From Geosiphon pyriformis uo1 (taxonomy: Eukaryota > Fungi > Glomeromycota): DNA of 9,687 nt. Positions within the stretch are counted from its first letter, which is position 1. Each line of letters opens with the position of its first letter. The notes beneath the pieces were generated by a model. It did no database searches. It was not told where the DNA came from and saw only the letters and a list, made by a program, of their open reading frames with translations. The translations under genes were made by a program, and so were the position numbers. Positions 1-9,687 of this stretch are shown piece by piece. The DNA lies in contig JAAOMT010000409.1 in assembly GCA_016748015.1 (NCBI GenBank), positions 1 through 9,687 of the forward strand. The letters run 5' to 3'.

Positions 1-1510
1 GTACTACCCGTACAACCCAGATTCCACTCCATCCCCAATCTACCCTAGTAGTACCGTAGGGAATATAGACCCTCCAATTATACCACCAAGACCCCAATAC
101 CAACAATTAGTACAAGAGGTACCATATCCCAAATATCCCTGACCCCCTTTACCCTCTATACTCCATATCCCATCTCCTCTCTACCCAGTATCACATACCC
201 ACCATCCCTAGTACACCAAATACCACTCAATTAGCAATACCTCTAAAGACTAAAAGATACGATGTATGGTAGCCATAACCACTAACACTCAAGCTAATAA
301 GATCACCAATGAGGTCCAGGATATACACTAAAATAGCGCATGCAAACTAACAATGTATAGCCGATATACACCATACCCACACCACTATGGGTTGTAAGGA
401 GTAGGTAGCCAGCAGCCCAATAGCAGGGAACTAACACTACCAAGGATAATGCTTGCTGCAGTGTAAGTATAATGCCCTAATGCAATAGACACCTTAGTAC
501 TAACTAATAATACAATAAGATTACTACCAACCTAGAGATGGTACCAATTAGCCTCAAATACCATAGATAGTGAAGTCTCGGTAGTTTATAGCCCAATAGG
601 TGCCCCAAAGTACAGCCACTGAATCCCCACGGTACCAACTAATGCCAGAATCATACCAGCCAAGATCAAATGGGGTCCATTGCCAAAGTACTAACTTAGG
701 TAAGGATAGACACACAAACTATATAACCATCACAAGGATCATTTAAAGGTTAGTGGAAGTTGAATTTGAGCCTGGGATAGGGTAGCCAATTAGTTAGTAC
801 TCCGATTGGGCCTGCTCCCCAACTATGGTAATTTACACTTTGGGATCATGGGAATTCCACTCTGGTAGTAGCCAGTACCTACTAAGATAAGATATAACCA
901 CCATTGAACAATAACTACCAATAATGAGGATACTGTAAGGATCATGCTAAGATCATTTAAGGGAGCCTATTCGATTGTATGGGCCCCACTACAATAGTGG
1001 TTTAAGCTAAAATGACACTACCAGCATAGGATAGCATCAATTTCACCCCTAACCTGAAGCACCTAAACTCTACAAAGGTAGTTTCATATCTCATGGTAAG
1101 ATCCACAAGTTTTATTGGTGTGGGAAGGACTATTGTAGGTCCCCTAATAGGCTGCCCAGTAGCCAATAATCAAGCAAGAGTTCAAACTACAAACACTCTA
1201 TAGGTATTCAATGGTACCTCCTAGCTATAGGGAACTATGAAGACTCCACAGCATCCCTAATCGAGGTATCTACGTTGGTAAGACACATAGCACTTTGAGA
1301 AGGATCATATTTAGAAATATTACCGACCTGACACTATGAACAACCACTACCATTGCTAAGATAGGGAACTACCAATTAGAGTAGCCCTAATAGACAACGG
1401 ATCGATTGCCCAAAGAGTAGGCACCAAATGAGGTCCCCAATAGGATACAATGACACACTGTAGTGGAAGTTTGAATTAAGCCTGGCAGCCCTATCTACTA
1501 TCCCCAATGA
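1..1510 (+). repeat. Terminal direct repeat, copy 1 (1510 bp)
   Basis: GTACTACCCGTACAACCCAG... at 1 recurs at 8178. The window end ...CTACTATCCCCAATGA equals 1495-1510. Internal spot checks (284/8461, 1184/9361) keep the 8177 offset with no mismatch seen. Confidence 0.97.
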
Positions 1511-1520
1511 CACACCGTAG
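229..1520 (+). rRNA. rrs: Extremely divergent bacterial/plastid-type SSU (16S) rRNA, copy A (approx. E. coli 240 to 1200-1400; boundaries approximate)
   Basis: Colinear landmarks matched by eye: ATTAGC 230; TACGATG..GTAGCC 258-274; GGTCCAG 313; ACAATG 350; CTATGGGTTGTAA 385-397; GCCAGCAGCC 408-417 (530 loop); GGAAGTTGAATT 755 (cf. GAAAGTGGAATT); CTGGTAGT 862; ATTG-TAT-GGGCCC-CACTACAATA-GTGGTTTAA 974-1005 (cf. ATTGACGGGGGCCCGCACAAGCGGTGG..GTGGTTTAA); CATGGT 1092; TAGGTCCC 1136 (cf. TAAGTCCC); AGTAGCCA 1158 (cf. AGTTGCCA); GGGAACT..AGACT 1230-1245; AAGACACATAGCACTT 1280 (cf. AAGTCATCATGGCCCTT); ACACACCG 1510. Order and rough spacing agree with 16S, but each motif is short. Confidence 0.62.
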
Positions 1521-1554
1521 CCATTGAGCCCTTTGGTCAGATCCCAATATGCCG

Positions 1555-2330
1555 GCTACCTAGATCTCCACTAACTAGGATTGGAACTATAGTAGCCGCC
1601 TACTCTGGTAACCTCCCCAGGGGTTAGAAGTAACACTTGAACTATCCCCCATCAAATAGAGGTAAGAGCCCAAATAGAGGTTCCCTATAAGTACCCACAA
1701 GATAGCCATAGCCAGAGTGAGTACTATCTCAGGTCTAATTAACCTAATAGGCACCACCACTCCCGAGATAGGCATAATACCTCCACTATTTAGTCCAATG
1801 ATAAGGCCCTGTAGCCAATATAGCAATCCCAGAGGTAAGACAACCTGCCATATATAGGATGAGATCCCACTGGATTTGAAGTCCAATCGTAGCCAACCCA
1901 ATTCCACTAATAATTAAAAAGATAAAAGTAACACTTTAACAGTAGGTAGCAAGTGTAAAGTACACATACACTAACCATAATGCACCATGGATCTAGGGTC
2001 CGATGGTAAGGCCCCATATATAAGATCCCAATAGACCAACTACCTCAATAGGGAACTACAAAATTGTAAGTAGTTTGGAAGTAGTATTAGCCCTAATGAG
2101 GCACAATGCTATAGACACCATCCCATACCTATTCGAGAGGGGTCCATTGCCATTGGCTTTACACTGTAGCCAGTAGCCATACCAGGTAACCATACACCAA
2201 CACCAACTAATAAGATCGAATGAGTTTAAAGGATTGAAGGTAGCGCGATAGGGAACTATTGCCCATTTACAACGGATCTCATAGTTACCCAATACCACCA
2301 GATCCAAAAGTTGAATTCCCAATGAGTAGG
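1555..2330 (+). rRNA. Second, independently diverged partial SSU rRNA copy B (5' and central domains, approx. E. coli 10-690); fragment or pseudogene
   Basis: Colinear motifs: GATC..AGGAT..GAAC 1563-1587; TAACACTTG 1631 (cf. TAACACATG); GTGAGTA 1717; TAATACC 1775; TAGC..GAGGTAA 1821-1838; AGGATGA..CACTGGA..GTCCA 1856-1885; TGTAAAGTAC 1954; GACCAACTAC 2034 (cf. GGCTAACTAC); TATTAGCCCTAATG 2085 (cf. TATTGGGCGTAAAG); AAAGTTGAATTCCCA 2307. It also shares private words with copy A, e.g. GGGGTCCATTGCCA at 672 and 2139. Confidence 0.48.
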
Positions 2331-2399
2331 TCCAGGTATTCTACCCATACCCATAACCCAGACCCCAATCCACCAATACCAACTACCACCTCTATCCCA

Positions 2400-3290
2400 C
2401 AATACCACTACTAGTACCATAGGGACTCCTAAATATTCCACTCCAACCCCCAGGACCCAAGTAGTACCCTAGGTACTATCATATCCCCTAGTACAAAATA
2501 TCCCCATATCCACGTACAAAGATTCCCTACCCACTACTACTACTACAATAGGTACCATCACTAGGACCCCCTATACCCAACCATATCCCCCTATTCTACC
2601 CATATGTCCCCATCCCCAATATCCCAGTACCCAAGATCCCAACCATTAATACCTATAGGACCCTCCCCCTATACATCCCCCTAGTACTTTGTACTATCAT
2701 CCGTACCTATCTCCCTAGATACCTATCTCCCATCACTACTACTCTATCTCCAATATCCCCATATCCCCCCAGTACCCAAGGTCTTCTATACCTTAGATCC
2801 CAACCATTCCTCCATACCCACCCACCATTAGTACCTAGATTCCCTACTCTACCCACTACCTATTATACCTATTTACCCCATGAGTACCAGATATGCCCCA
2901 TCACACCATCTTCCCTATTCTAAACCTCTGCCAAGATCCCCTCTACCCCAGATCCACCATACTCTCTATCCCCAACGCCACTAGGTACTACCCATCCCCG
3001 TACCTATCTGCCCAATCTCCCATATGCCCATACCCACCATACCCTAGGACACTCCCCCCTTCTACCCCTCTATACCCAAGACTCTAGTCCCCTATTACCT
3101 ATACTACCTATAGACCCAACCATGAGTACCCATAATACCAAATACCACTTCCCCCAGTCCATAGGTACTACCCCCTTCACTATCTCCCATATTCCCTACT
3201 ATCCATCCCAACCATAGGTCCTCTACAATAGGGACTATCCCTATGACACTCCATCCGCAAGATCCCCCATGAGTACCCTAGGTACCACAA
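2400..3290. repeat. Same GTAC-arm pseudo-palindrome family, left flank
   Basis: GTAC-CATAG-GGAC 2416; TAGTACC-CTA-GGTACTA 2462-2478 (7-bp stem); GTAC-CCTAG-GTAC 3273. CCATGAGT at 2878, 3120 and 3267. Confidence 0.75.
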
Positions 3291-3472
3291 CCAAACCACG
3301 CCCATCCAGGAGCACAGACTACCCAATACCCATACCATGACATCCTCCACACAGGATCATACCTACCATCCACAACCCACACCCACACATGCCCCAGTAC
3401 CTATCCACACCATACCCAAATACCCATCTATACCCAACCCCTACAAACCACACTCTCCACCCAACCCCATTT

Positions 3473-5259
3473 GTGCCAGGCAACCATCCACACCAACACT
3501 ACCCATTGGAGCACACACCATACAACCGCCCTTATAGGAGCACTATCACTACCACCCATACCAACCATCCACATACTACCCACCCACATTCCACAGGATC
3601 GCGATACCCCCTACTACCCAATACCAATCCACACATGCCCTACTACCCCATTATCGATACAACCCACCCATACCACAAGTGCCATAGGCACCATTCCACA
3701 CATCCATATCCTCCCCTGGGTGCAAGAGGCAACCACACATACCATATTCCACAATACCACCCATCCACTATCCACATTCCACACTGGTGCAAAAGGCTAC
3801 CACAATACCAAAGCCCAATAAAACCCCAGGGCCATAGGCCCCTCCAGACTACCCATGCCTACCAATCAACTGCTACCCTATAGGATCGATACCTCCCACA
3901 AGATACCCACAGGACCCCACACTACAACACATACCCAACATACCAGACCCACACACAATTTGTGCAATAGGCACCACCATACATCCCATATTACCCCACA
4001 ACCACCCTAGGTGCCAAATGCCCATCCCATACCATCCATTACACAGGAGCATACATCTACCATACCACATACCCATACTTCCACACCCATCCCATACAGG
4101 TGCCATAGGCCATACAACACAGGACCCATTCCTTACTATCATACTACCCAATACCTACTACCCCATTTCCCAAAGCCCATGCTCGTCCCCAATACTATAC
4201 TACACATGTGCAATAGGCACCCAATACCTCTACAAACTCCCTACATCCATCCACTACCACATACCCATCCAACAAATCCACCATAAACCCACCTACCCAT
4301 CCATCCAAGGCTGCCTCCAATACCATACCCCTCCAATCCCCACAACTACAGGACCACAATACCACTGCTCAGCATACCTCACACTGGCTTGCCACAGTAC
4401 CTACCAAACCCTATTTGCTTGCCCCGTACCACACTGCCCATCAACCCCAAAGTGCCCAGGCACAACCCATTACACATTACACCATACCCTAATACCTATC
4501 CACCACTCACATTCAACCCAGGTGCCCTGGCCAGACTACCATTTACCACACCCAAGGTGCCAAATGCCTACATACCCTATTCCCCACCACCATAGGTGCC
4601 ATAGGCCCCCATTACCAGTACCATCCACATTCCACCATACCCATCCACATTCCACAATACCCATCAGGATCGATACCCACGTGCCAAAGGCTACCACACT
4701 ACCTATAGGATCACACACTGGTGGCACAGGCACCCAATACCTCCCCTCTAGGACCCAAGCCTACTACCCATATCCCTACTACTACCCTCAGACTCCCCCA
4801 ATACCCATCCATACCTATAAGCACCCAACCCTAGGTGCCAAAGGCCCCACAGACCTGAGGAGCAATACCTACATTAAATAGGGCAATAGGCACCACAATA
4901 CCCATCAACAAGACTACTCAAAATACCACACTACTCCACAAACAACTCCACTAGGGCCATAGGCCCATCCACATCCCACAAGATACCCCCATATACCACA
5001 TGCCCATACCCATACCCAACACTACTCTAGGAGCACATACCACATACCCAATACCTACCACCATGAGTATCCTAGAGGACCACAAGTACTCCATCCTCCA
5101 CGACCGACCATGAGTCCCCTATACCCAGTCCCAGAGGTACTCTACCTACCCTTATCCACAATAGGTCCACCAGACCCTTAGACCCCAGAGGTCCCATCAC
5201 ACATTCTACCCATACTACCAAATGCCCTATGACCACTTTTCCCCATAGGCAATAGGCAC
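3473..5259. repeat. Dispersed array of ~17 GC-arm pseudo-palindromes, consensus GTGC-MAWAG-GCMC; candidate core/origin region
   Basis: GTGCCATAGGCAC 3679; GGGCCATAGGCCC 3829 and 4954; GTGCAATAGGCAC 3962 and 4208; GTGCCATAGGCC 4100 and 4596; GTGCCCAGGCAC 4452; GTGCCAAAGGC 4681 and 4835; GTGCAAGAGGCA 3720; GTGCAAAAGGC 3787; GGCAATAGGCAC 4882 and 5248. The repeats are seen directly; origin function is inference. Confidence 0.8.
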
Positions 5260-8200
5260 TACATCATCCACTAGACCCACCATACACCATAACCAAATAC
5301 CACAACAACTCTACCATACCACCAATTCTACCCAACCATCCACCAAGACTCCCTCTCCCCATCCCTATGACTCTCCATCCTCAAGGACCACCAGGAGTAC
5401 CCATAATACCCATACCACTATTACCCATTCCCCAATAGTACCCATCCCCCAATACCCATCCAACCCCTATAACACTAGTACCCTAGTATCCCCTATTCCC
5501 TATGTCCCCAATGTCCCATTCTACCCTATGTCCTATATTCCACCATACCATCATACCCAAGATCCCACCATCTCACAAATAGTACAATAGGTACCCATTA
5601 GTCCCATAGGTATTATACCCCATATCCCCATATGCCCCATATCCCCAATACTATATCCCCTCTACTAGACCCAACCATATCACACCTACCATTACTACCT
5701 AGATCCCATACCCAATACGTACCACTAGGTCTCTAGTCCACCATACTCGTACCCTATGCCCATATGCCCCATATACCAAATACCCACCATATCCACAATC
5801 TACCATTCTACCCATATCCCACCATGAGTACCAAATATCCCCACCATTCTCTCTACTAGTACCCCACTCTACACTAGTACCTGGTACTCTCACCCAGAAC
5901 CACTATTACAAATGTCCCACAATACCAAATCCCTACCCCATCACTAGTCCAACAGGTCCTCCATTATCCCTATGACCCAACCATGAGTCCCTAATACCTC
6001 TACTCCATGTGTCCCAAGGAGGACCACAGGTCTTACCCAATACCAACCATATCCACTATATGACCCAGACCCTAATACAATAGGTACTACATCAAATACC
6101 CAGATTCCCACCACCATCATACCCCATCCCCTCTTACCCATTCTACAACAGGGACTCTCATATCCACCATACCCCTTATACCCAGATTCCCTATCTGACC
6201 AAATGTCCTACCTCATACATAATCCTACCCATAATACCCATGTCATACATCAATACCCATAACTATTACCCATTCCCCATAGGACCGGGGTCCTACTCTC
6301 CCATAGACCCTATCTGACCCATAACCCAGTACCACAATATCCATTATACCCCAATAGTACAAAAGGTCAGACATCACCCATTCTACCCATCCTACCAGAG
6401 ACCCTCTACCCATACCCCAGATCCCCTATCCCCTATCATACCTCCACCATACCAAATATCCCTCTATCCAGTACCAAATCCCACAACAAGGACCGTAGGT
6501 CGATACAGACCCATACCATCCACCATACCCTAAAACCAAATACCACCATTATACCTCTACCACTACCGAGTCCCGTGGTACTATATACCCAGATTACCCC
6601 CTCTTCCCCAATACCCCAGGCCCATATACCCAGTCACAAGAGGTATTAGACCCATCATACACTCCCCCCCATTAGGACCGTAGGTCCTCTATCCCCTATT
6701 ACCCAGTACCCATCTACCCTATCTCCCATACCCTAGATCCCTTAGTACAATGAGTACCCATATTCCCCATTACCCACTCTACCATTCTACCACCATCTCC
6801 AATCTAACCCATAGTACCGTAGGGACTCTATCCTACCCTATCTCCACTACTAGTACCTCATACCCTATATCACACCAGAGTCCCGTGGTACTACACCCTT
6901 ATCTCCAATCATACCCACTACCCATAGATGTCCCACCATTCCCACTACTAGTACAGAGGTACTCTACCATCTGCCCAGACCCTATCTCCCCTATGACCAT
7001 TCCCACCCACTATGACCCATTGGTACGGAGGTCCCTACCCACACCCTAGAAGACAATAGGTACTCCACCATACCTCATACCCACTCTACCAACCACTACC
7101 ACTAATACCAGATACCCTTACCAGTCCCCACTATCCCATACCCATGATACCAGACGACAGGTACTCCTATATCCCATATTACCCATATCCCACCAGTACC
7201 TGGGACTATCCATACTCCTCTATCCCCACTACCCATTAGGACATACGGTACTACTAGATCCCATTATACCTATCACAACCACTATTCCACCATACCCACT
7301 CTACCATAGACCAGGACCCATTACCCATATTACCCATATTCCCCAGATGCCCTATCATACCAATACCCATGAGTCCCCTATCTCCCATACCAAATGTCCC
7401 CTATGAGTACACTAGGTCCTCTCTCCTCAGACAACAGGTCCTCCAATACCATATTCACTAGACCCGTACCTACATCCCATATGACCCCTATTAGTACCCT
7501 TATACCCCATCCACCAGGAGTCCCCATCAGACCTACCATACCAAGATTCCCTATATCATACCCACCATACCCTACTACCATCTGTACTACCCAATCGACC
7601 CATTCCCCACATCTAGTCCAAAAGGTATGACAATACCTCATATCCCATACCCCAATAGTACCATTTGTACTCCAATATCCCCTAATACCAGAGTATTACC
7701 CTAATTACTCTACATAACCTATAACCCCAGAGTCCCCTGAATACCTATCTCCCCTATGCCCATAATCCACTCCATCTAGTCCGAGGTACTATACTAACCC
7801 ACCATGTCCCCTATATACAATAGGTACTCTCATCTGCCCATACCACCCAGAGGACCCTAGGTACTACTAATACCACTATGTCCCTACTACCCATACTACC
7901 CTAATCCAAGAGGTATTACAATACCCCTAGACCTATCTCACACAATGCCTATAGTACCTATCATACCCATATGCCCTATCTTACCCAATACCCACTCTCC
8001 CCTATAACCCAGACACTACTACCCTAGATCCCTCTACTCCCTACTACCCACTATCCCAACCACTATTACCCATATTCTCCATCTATCCCAACCAGACCCA
8101 GGACCCAATAGTACCAAATATGCCTGACCCACCATGTTTCCTATTACCCATTACCCTACTACAAAATAGTACCCTTTGTACTACCCGTACAACCCAGATT

Positions 8201-8300
8201 CCACTCCATCCCCAATCTACCCTAGTAGTACCGTAGGGAATATAGACCCTCCAATTATACCACCAAGACCCCAATACCAACAATTAGTACAAGAGGTACC
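5061..8300. repeat. Dispersed GTAC/GGAC/GTCC-arm pseudo-palindromes (arm-N5-arm) and CCATGAGT words, right flank
   Basis: GTAC-AATAG-GTAC 5582; AGGAC-CGTAG-GTCCT 6674; GTAC-CGTAG-GGAC 6814; AGTAC-CATTT-GTACT 7657; TAGTAC-CCTTT-GTACTA 8167; GTAC-AAGAG-GTAC 8287 (= 110). CCATGAGT at 5061, 5108, 5822, 5981 and 7367. Confidence 0.75.
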
Positions 8301-9687
8301 ATATCCCAAATATCCCTGACCCCCTTTACCCTCTATACTCCATATCCCATCTCCTCTCTACCCAGTATCACATACCCACCATCCCTAGTACACCAAATAC
8401 CACTCAATTAGCAATACCTCTAAAGACTAAAAGATACGATGTATGGTAGCCATAACCACTAACACTCAAGCTAATAAGATCACCAATGAGGTCCAGGATA
8501 TACACTAAAATAGCGCATGCAAACTAACAATGTATAGCCGATATACACCATACCCACACCACTATGGGTTGTAAGGAGTAGGTAGCCAGCAGCCCAATAG
8601 CAGGGAACTAACACTACCAAGGATAATGCTTGCTGCAGTGTAAGTATAATGCCCTAATGCAATAGACACCTTAGTACTAACTAATAATACAATAAGATTA
8701 CTACCAACCTAGAGATGGTACCAATTAGCCTCAAATACCATAGATAGTGAAGTCTCGGTAGTTTATAGCCCAATAGGTGCCCCAAAGTACAGCCACTGAA
8801 TCCCCACGGTACCAACTAATGCCAGAATCATACCAGCCAAGATCAAATGGGGTCCATTGCCAAAGTACTAACTTAGGTAAGGATAGACACACAAACTATA
8901 TAACCATCACAAGGATCATTTAAAGGTTAGTGGAAGTTGAATTTGAGCCTGGGATAGGGTAGCCAATTAGTTAGTACTCCGATTGGGCCTGCTCCCCAAC
9001 TATGGTAATTTACACTTTGGGATCATGGGAATTCCACTCTGGTAGTAGCCAGTACCTACTAAGATAAGATATAACCACCATTGAACAATAACTACCAATA
9101 ATGAGGATACTGTAAGGATCATGCTAAGATCATTTAAGGGAGCCTATTCGATTGTATGGGCCCCACTACAATAGTGGTTTAAGCTAAAATGACACTACCA
9201 GCATAGGATAGCATCAATTTCACCCCTAACCTGAAGCACCTAAACTCTACAAAGGTAGTTTCATATCTCATGGTAAGATCCACAAGTTTTATTGGTGTGG
9301 GAAGGACTATTGTAGGTCCCCTAATAGGCTGCCCAGTAGCCAATAATCAAGCAAGAGTTCAAACTACAAACACTCTATAGGTATTCAATGGTACCTCCTA
9401 GCTATAGGGAACTATGAAGACTCCACAGCATCCCTAATCGAGGTATCTACGTTGGTAAGACACATAGCACTTTGAGAAGGATCATATTTAGAAATATTAC
9501 CGACCTGACACTATGAACAACCACTACCATTGCTAAGATAGGGAACTACCAATTAGAGTAGCCCTAATAGACAACGGATCGATTGCCCAAAGAGTAGGCA
9601 CCAAATGAGGTCCCCAATAGGATACAATGACACACTGTAGTGGAAGTTTGAATTAAGCCTGGCAGCCCTATCTACTATCCCCAATGA
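8178..9687 (+). repeat. Terminal direct repeat, copy 2 (circular overlap or start of the next tandem unit)
   Basis: Matches 1-1510 at a constant offset of 8177 and runs to the last base of the window. Confidence 0.97.
8406..9687 (+). rRNA. Redundant re-read of SSU rRNA copy A inside the terminal repeat (truncated by the window end)
   Basis: Same sequence as 229-1510 at offset 8177. Confidence 0.6.

Follow-up and report, generated by a model that had tools for sequence, protein, structure and literature searches.

A gene-less 8.2-kb circular-mapping DNA and its small sister circles in the Geosiphon pyriformis assembly

The stretch of DNA analysed here (the window) comprises contig C208 in full (JAAOMT010000409.1; 9,687 nt), one of the 792 contigs of the 128-Mb eukaryotic assembly of Geosiphon pyriformis uo1 (GCA_016748015.1). 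Its best-supported description is that of a complete, gene-less, circular-mapping DNA within a population of at least 15–20 sequence-unrelated circles of 5–12 kb, all written in one compositional 'dialect'. Judged from sequence, these circles are likeliest to belong to the mitochondria of the sequenced fungus, and the window may represent either an empty chromosome of a mitochondrial genome split into many, or a passenger circle resembling a plasmid.

Results

Organization of the window

The features of the window are as follows (positions are those of the window; no strand is given where none applies).

1–8177: one full unit (M1) of a circular-mapping (or head-to-tail) molecule, defined by an exact overlap and an 8,186-nt contig from sequencing run X1
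8178–9687: assembly overlap, second copy of 1–1510, with 0 mismatches in 1510 positions
1–249, + strand: end of the G-depleted zone, ahead of the island (G 8 %)
250–2350: unique island of near-normal G content (19 %), without gene signal, set apart by its composition and by the lack of a match in sister molecules
1590–1907, − strand: longest open reading frame (ORF) of the island, 106 aa, an orphan not taken as a gene (no Pfam match, no relative, no periodicity)
2351–3153, + strand: part A1 of the G-depleted zone (G 7 %, C 41 %), with G-free 7–9-nt TACCCA-like microrepeats and short GTAC-type hairpins
3154–3308, + strand: blocks conserved in sister molecules, the only such blocks in the window and a candidate cis-acting site
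3309–5260, + strand: part B of the G-depleted zone, T-poor (17 %), with GGTGCC-ATA-GGCMCC hairpins and the motifs AGGATCGATACC and AGGAGCAC
3838–4878, + strand: open frame of 347 codons, a by-product of low G and T and not a gene
5261–8177, + strand: part A2 of the G-depleted zone (G 8 %), with GTAC/GGTCC-type hairpins, running on across the junction through 1–249

Positions 1–1510 are identical to positions 8178–9687 (mismatches 0/1510), which gives a unit of 8,177 bp. In X1, a run from the assembly's own sample, a k-mer contig of 8,186 nt at depth 75 makes one turn of the same circle and ends 9 nt beyond its own start; it contains no variant position and is broken at 3265–3273, within a block shared with a sister molecule. 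The exact repeat and the self-closing contig bear out the 1510-bp terminal redundancy of an 8.2-kb circle that had been noticed in a first-pass annotation of the sequence. Among indexed public runs the sequence is present in X1 only, and two further runs of the same sample lack it. A BLAST search of the 128-Mb assembly with the window finds only the window itself, with neither a second copy nor flanking chromosomal sequence, and this lack of any other copy counts in favor of an origin outside the nuclear genome. A missed-adapter palindrome artefact was ruled out by the absence of inverted repeats.

Over the 6.1 kb that lead from about position 2350 across the junction to 250, or 73 % of the unit, the + strand contains 7–10 % G and about 40 % C, and the opposite strand consists of 40 % G, 30 % T and only 8 % C. 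The 2.1-kb island (~250–2350), with 19 % G against 7–10 % elsewhere, is real as a compositional island and has private words of its own, GTAGCC (12 copies) and GGGAACTA (5 copies). Most of the G residues of the skewed zone lie in about 200 small clusters, many of which are short hairpins of the type AGKMCC-N3-GGKMCT (GGTGCC-ATA-GGCMCC within 3300–5260), set in a G-free background of 7–9-nt TACCCA- or CCCCATAT-like microrepeats. The whole skewed zone contains 36 perfect hairpins with a 5-bp stem, compared with 6.7 +/- 3.0 for shuffled sequences; the figures for the island are 10 against 8.5. G-quadruplex motifs on the − strand of the zone number 14, whereas shuffles have 4.4 +/- 1.9. A simple satellite was rejected, since there are only 7–9-nt microrepeats and no unit structure. 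A bisulfite-like origin, or one resembling repeat-induced point mutation, is unlikely, given that the G residues kept lie outside a CpG context and that the GC content of 46–48 % exceeds that of nuclear samples.

Absence of recognizable genes

The first-pass annotation had found no credible coding sequence in the circle, and our searches agree. Three-base periodicity, assessed by a measure independent of base labels and of reversal, is absent from every region of the window. Around the 347-codon frame all three + frames are open for at least 180 codons, and because G and T are scarce there such long open frames cannot be taken as genes; the translation is low-complexity, rich in P, T, H and Y, and no homologue was found. 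None of 10 island ORFs has a Pfam match, the 106-aa ORF has 0 matches among 1.84 billion representative proteins, and a protein search with a spurious 287-aa ORF found nothing. With no window ORF matching Pfam, the circle has no recognizable DNA or RNA polymerase or reverse transcriptase of its own, as a fungal mitochondrial plasmid would have, and no tRNA was detected in the window. Coding under other genetic codes or after relabelling of bases was rejected as well, since the totals of open frames follow composition alone and periodicity is absent. Searches of plasmids, phages, viral contigs, metagenome contigs and prokaryotic genome contigs returned no relatives.

The only cargo that had been proposed for the circle was a hyper-divergent 16S-like ribosomal RNA (rRNA) gene, read into the island from more than 20 colinear landmarks of small-subunit (SSU) rRNA. 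The island is indeed alone in having a near-normal composition, and a few short words, for instance around 405–425, resemble SSU motifs. Yet Rfam cmscan returned nothing for the window at E<=1, and for 150–2450 at E<=10 only four unrelated weak matches, none of them to SSU or large-subunit rRNA; across the whole assembly the bacterial SSU covariance model RF00177 matched only nuclear 18S and gave no signal from the window. BLAST of the island against 18S at word size 7 yielded scattered matches that are not colinear. In global alignment to the 18S of the assembly, the − strand of the island scored 914, against 893 +/- 17.5 for dinucleotide shuffles and 932 for a reversed-18S decoy; the + strand also fell inside the shuffle range, as did the local alignment scores against a mitochondrial-type SSU piece on contig C703. 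Fold energies are ordinary, and the apparent '515-like' word near 405 is one of the twelve copies of GTAGCC in the island. A conventional, well-conserved mitochondrial-type SSU piece is found elsewhere in the assembly, on C703. Very short rRNA pieces (about 100 nt) can escape cmscan, since the true ~100-nt SSU piece of C703 was not among the cmscan matches listed (150 of 326). As far as these methods allow, the 16S reading of the island is largely refuted, and we regard such a gene as extremely improbable; the island would rather be unique filler or an unrecognizable small-RNA locus.

A population of sister circles

Short pieces shared between X1 contigs and the window pointed to contigs C246 and C133, which overlap by 1380 identical bases and together make one molecule of 7,674 bp of the same make as the window, with an unrelated island of its own and a GC skew that changes strand near merged position 2460. 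This molecule also has a private word, GGTCCCCA, present in eight copies within merged positions 700–900, and an unclosed end with poly-G runs. A search of the assembly with a triple TACCCA pattern returned about 20 small contigs and, apart from simple microsatellites, no large one.

About 20 small contigs of non-nuclear composition: C51, C60, C61, C72, C74, C75, C81, C82, C85, C97, C115, C127, C131, C147, C151, C187, C211, C241, C319

Also caught by the pattern search, on the large nuclear contig C441 (105333–105482), was a tandem array of a 24-nt, TACCCACAACAACAAGGAGGAGCA-like repeat that is unrelated to the circles.

Thirteen contigs fetched after the pattern search were analysed in detail. 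They are 5–12.6 kb long, and 6/13 have a terminal redundancy of their own, with units of 5236, 6953, 7937, 8441, 8995 and 11926 bp. Altogether, at least 15 further contigs of the window's kind, 5–12 kb in length and without a recognized gene, are present in the assembly, six of them confirmed as circular-mapping. Several distinct circular-mapping molecules hence occur in one sample: the 8177-bp window unit, these six sisters and the gene-bearing contig C52 described below. The fetched contigs contain no ORF above 270 aa, no tRNA and no periodicity; their ten longest ORFs have no Pfam match, and their 110 kb gave no match in Rfam. Each of them includes a zone with 8–12 % of one base, usually enriched in hairpins and occupying 9–30 % of the molecule. 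The window, whose skewed zone takes up 73 % of the unit, is the extreme member of the family.

What unites the members is a dinucleotide signature: CpG 0.13–0.37, CC/GG 1.47–1.77 and TpA 1.2–1.5 in the 13 fetched contigs, and CpG 0.13–0.37, CC/GG 1.45–1.8 and TpA 1.2–1.57 when all circles are considered. This signature is absent from three short nuclear samples (CC/GG 0.93–1.11, TpA 0.55–0.84). The delta* of the window island is 68 to C52, 54–141 to other circles and 243–263 to the nuclear samples. Sequence, on the other hand, is shared in short pairwise blocks of 66–159 nt, all inside skewed zones: window 3244–3308 matches the C133/C246 molecule over 66 nt (94 %, with a 51-nt identical core), window 3154–3230 matches C131 over 79 nt (83.5 %), and C51 and C75 have a 159-nt block in common. 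The members are otherwise unrelated in sequence. Apart from poly-G/C runs, which the window lacks, they have no k-mer of 12 or more in common, and the window island has no match in the sister molecules even at word size 7. It had been anticipated that sister circles would share positions 3300–5260; sister molecules do exist, with blocks of 66–159 nt and hairpin motifs in common, but they do not share the whole stretch, and the hairpin, AGGATCGATACC and AGGAGCAC motifs of part B are common only to the C133/C246 molecule.

Run X1 contains two more contigs with the sequence flavor of the circles, of 11,581 and 11,857 nt and of high depth (139 and 171, respectively). With up to 3 mismatches allowed, the short pieces that they share with the window have no match elsewhere in the assembly. 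The deposited contigs seem to lack at least the 11.6-kb molecule, possibly a removed circle; the 11.9-kb contig may correspond to C51 (unit 11926 bp). The circles were assembled whole in X1 at k-mer depths of 75–171 while the 2.09 million contigs of this run average about 74 nt, which suggests a high copy number.

These observations bear on whether the unit might instead be a long-unit satellite, repeated in tandem in the nuclear genome, or an extrachromosomal circle that derives from a chromosome. A terminal redundancy fits a circle and a head-to-tail array equally well. Against this, neither a second copy nor a chromosomal flank exists in the 128-Mb assembly, about 20 different units each occupy their own small contig, the dinucleotide signature is unlike that of the nuclear samples, and the circles came out complete in a run that otherwise consists of tiny contigs. 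We therefore hold a nuclear origin to be highly improbable, and the approximately 20 contigs deposited in a nuclear assembly are probably not nuclear.

Possible links to a mitochondrial genome

The only recognizable gene of the family and a polymerase relic are on C52, a circular-mapping unit of 6,439 bp with the same dinucleotide signature as the window.

C52 6105–6374, − strand: nad4L, 89 aa, intact, passing the Pfam threshold
C52 4275–4703, − strand: relic of a plasmid-type DNA polymerase B (PF03175) with five stops (3 TGA, 2 TAA)

In the PDB, the nad4L product is matched best by ND4L chains of fungi, first Chaetomium and then Yarrowia, which are likewise 89 aa long, so that the 'unsampled lineage' suggested in the first-pass annotation finds no support in the one recognizable gene of the family. 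The nad4L sense strand is the G-rich strand of C52. Fungal nad4L normally adjoins nad5; on C52 it stands alone. The polymerase relic is the only PF03175 match of the assembly in a six-frame search with stops read through, and a Pfam search with the 92-aa ORF of C52 alone gave no match. Relics of such plasmid-type polymerase (dpo) genes are typical of glomeromycotan mitochondrial DNA (mtDNA) (PMC4316621). A second link is provided by C703 (C703:22308–25326, locus 1490–1600), where a well-conserved mitochondrial-type SSU piece, covering the 515 region, is surrounded by GC-rich poly-G/poly-C hairpin repeats (69 % GC). These GC-rich hairpin elements have weak matches in 7 circles, the window not being among them.

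The rest of a mitochondrial genome is conspicuously missing. Searches for cox1, cob, nad2/4/5, nad3, nad6 and cox3 found no match in the 128-Mb assembly, including nuclear copies of mtDNA, and no LAGLIDADG match was found anywhere in it. Because not even nuclear copies of these genes are matched, conventional mitochondrial sequence may have been filtered out; recognizable mitochondrial contigs would have been removed before deposition and unrecognizable ones kept. This accords with the 11.6-kb X1 contig of the same flavor that is missing from the assembly. The first-pass annotation had regarded the window as one chromosome of a multipartite organellar genome. The multiplicity stands, with at least 15 further contigs of the same signature and zones and with nad4L on C52, but the searches did not turn up a full gene set.

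The circles might also be a technical product, such as whole-genome-amplification junk or another library artefact, and the roughly 125 kb without gene or homologue, the odd composition and the restriction to one run would all be consistent with that. Template-independent amplification products, however, are short-period repeats, and the circles are unique complex sequences with a consistent zone architecture and common blocks; in the k-mer assembly the window joins up exactly and, at depth 75, is free of variants, and an intact nad4L lies on a contig with the family signature. An artefact is thus very unlikely.

Discussion

Taken together, the data lead us to propose tentatively, at slightly less than even odds, that the window belongs to the mitochondria of the fungus, as an 'empty' mini-chromosome or a circle akin to a plasmid. 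Several observations weigh against this proposal. The window itself has no mitochondrial gene, no C703-type poly-G/C element and no alignable sequence in common with C52, and its link to mitochondria would be indirect, through the signature and a chain of sisters. The nad4L gene is the sole recognizable mitochondrial protein gene in the assembly and reaches no more than about 36 % identity with its best database relatives, and the sister circles offer, beyond this gene, the dpo relic only. No motif is common to all circles. Moreover, the window sequence is confined to one run of one sample and absent from two others.

Some of these points would also fit with the circles being the multi-circle organellar or extrachromosomal DNA of another eukaryote, a fungus or a protist, present in a non-axenic culture. 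The circles have no relatives in the public collections searched, their nad4L is very divergent, their composition is unlike that of the nuclear samples, and they occur in one run only; sequences without a database match also tend to survive contaminant filters. Such a contaminant is nevertheless unlikely, if a good deal less so than the technical and nuclear explanations above. Among solved structures, the two closest to nad4L come from fungi and are identical in length, some circles have the GC-rich hairpin elements of C703, the bearer of the mitochondrial-type SSU piece, and the dpo relic is of a kind typical of glomeromycotan mtDNA (PMC4316621).

If the circles are mitochondrial, each of them would need only a cis-acting maintenance region, which in the window may be 3154–3308. 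The strand-asymmetric zone is the likeliest seat of replication and maintenance, because all circles have one and only there is sequence shared. The depletion of G could be the footprint of one-sided C-to-T decay on a strand left single-stranded in strand-displacement replication, in transcription, or in both, and the few surviving G residues (C:G pairs) would be those that sit preferentially in short hairpins. The G-rich strand may be prone to form G-quadruplexes or R-loops, possibly serving in priming; since the sense strand of nad4L on C52 is the G-rich strand, transcripts of the zone would likewise be G-rich and R-loop-prone. In vertebrate mtDNA, a G/T-rich H strand is paired with an A/C-rich L strand, an asymmetry ascribed to deamination while single-stranded. 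The circles resemble this case in that one strand is depleted in C and enriched in G+T; they differ in that the depletion is far greater (8 %, compared with about 13 % genome-wide), restricted to zones with sharp boundaries and punctuated by hairpins. The full form of this model, in which the mtDNA of this early-diverging, mycorrhiza-type fungus has been shattered into dozens of circles of 5–12 kb, most of them gene-less and each kept by a hyper-asymmetric, hairpin-studded and G-quadruplex-prone zone without a shared core, is more doubtful than the mitochondrial assignment of the window itself, and we put it forward as a possibility.

Fragmented organellar genomes offer several points of comparison. 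Dinoflagellate plastid minicircles are small, carry plastid genes, with one gene or none on each, and have a non-coding region whose core is common within a species. This analogy, raised in the first-pass annotation, does not hold here: psbA (PF00124) has no match in the assembly, the pairwise blocks of 66–159 nt do not amount to a core present in all circles, and the family's single gene is of a mitochondrial, fungal-like kind.

Kinetoplastid minicircles and diplonemid chromosomes form many ORF-less classes with conserved regions (conserved sequence blocks (CSB) and the universal minicircle sequence, or a class-wide constant region), the diplonemid type combining a unique cassette with a large non-coding part. 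The many ORF-less classes of circles in the present assembly are similar, and one could imagine minicircles of the guide-RNA or cryptogene type, whose content becomes legible only through extensive RNA editing or trans-splicing. The existence of so many sequence classes, unrelated to one another and lacking ORFs, tRNAs and rRNAs, and the arrangement of a unique cassette beside a large non-coding part, would agree with this. So would base composition, since guide RNAs are C-poor and the strand that would be RNA-like by analogy with nad4L of C52 is C-poor too. Nevertheless, the universal minicircle sequence (the CSB-3 12-mer) is not above chance in the window (with up to 2 mismatches allowed there are 6 matches where 8.6 are expected, and the best one has 1 mismatch), and no class-wide constant region is common to the circles. 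Six-frame searches of the assembly found no cox1, cob or nad module, even with stops read through, and the family's one gene, nad4L, is intact and unedited. RNA editing of the kinetoplastid or diplonemid kind is not known from fungi, and we consider this explanation hardly credible.

Closer parallels to the mitochondrial reading are found in plants and in the Glomeromycota themselves. The mitochondria of Silene noctiflora and S. conica contain dozens of circular-mapping chromosomes that are mostly non-coding and in part gene-less (PMC4647634). However, the plant chromosomes are tens to hundreds of kb in size, have repeats in common and lack the extreme depletion of one base on one strand (PMC4647634), whereas the circles described here are of 5–12 kb and of fungal type, and no full gene set was found on the sisters. 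In Rhizophagus sp. DAOM 213198, a glomeromycotan mtDNA is likewise divided into circles, and relics of plasmid-type dpo lie where it was broken (PMC4316621). That genome consists of two gene-dense chromosomes (62 and 29 kb) with 36.5 % GC (PMC4316621), in contrast to the many small and nearly gene-free circles of 44–49 % GC seen here.

Should the circles prove mitochondrial, a fungus would join the Silene-type plants and a few protists and animals whose organelle genomes are fragmented and include gene-less chromosomes, with circles much smaller than those of the Silene type and devoid of a shared core. Zones with such sharp limits, in which one base falls to about 8 %, would then represent a natural record of one-sided damage in single-stranded DNA. 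How gene-less molecules replicate and are passed on would become a testable question and, if the interpretation is true, fungi would gain their first example of a multichromosomal mitochondrial genome that includes 'empty' chromosomes.

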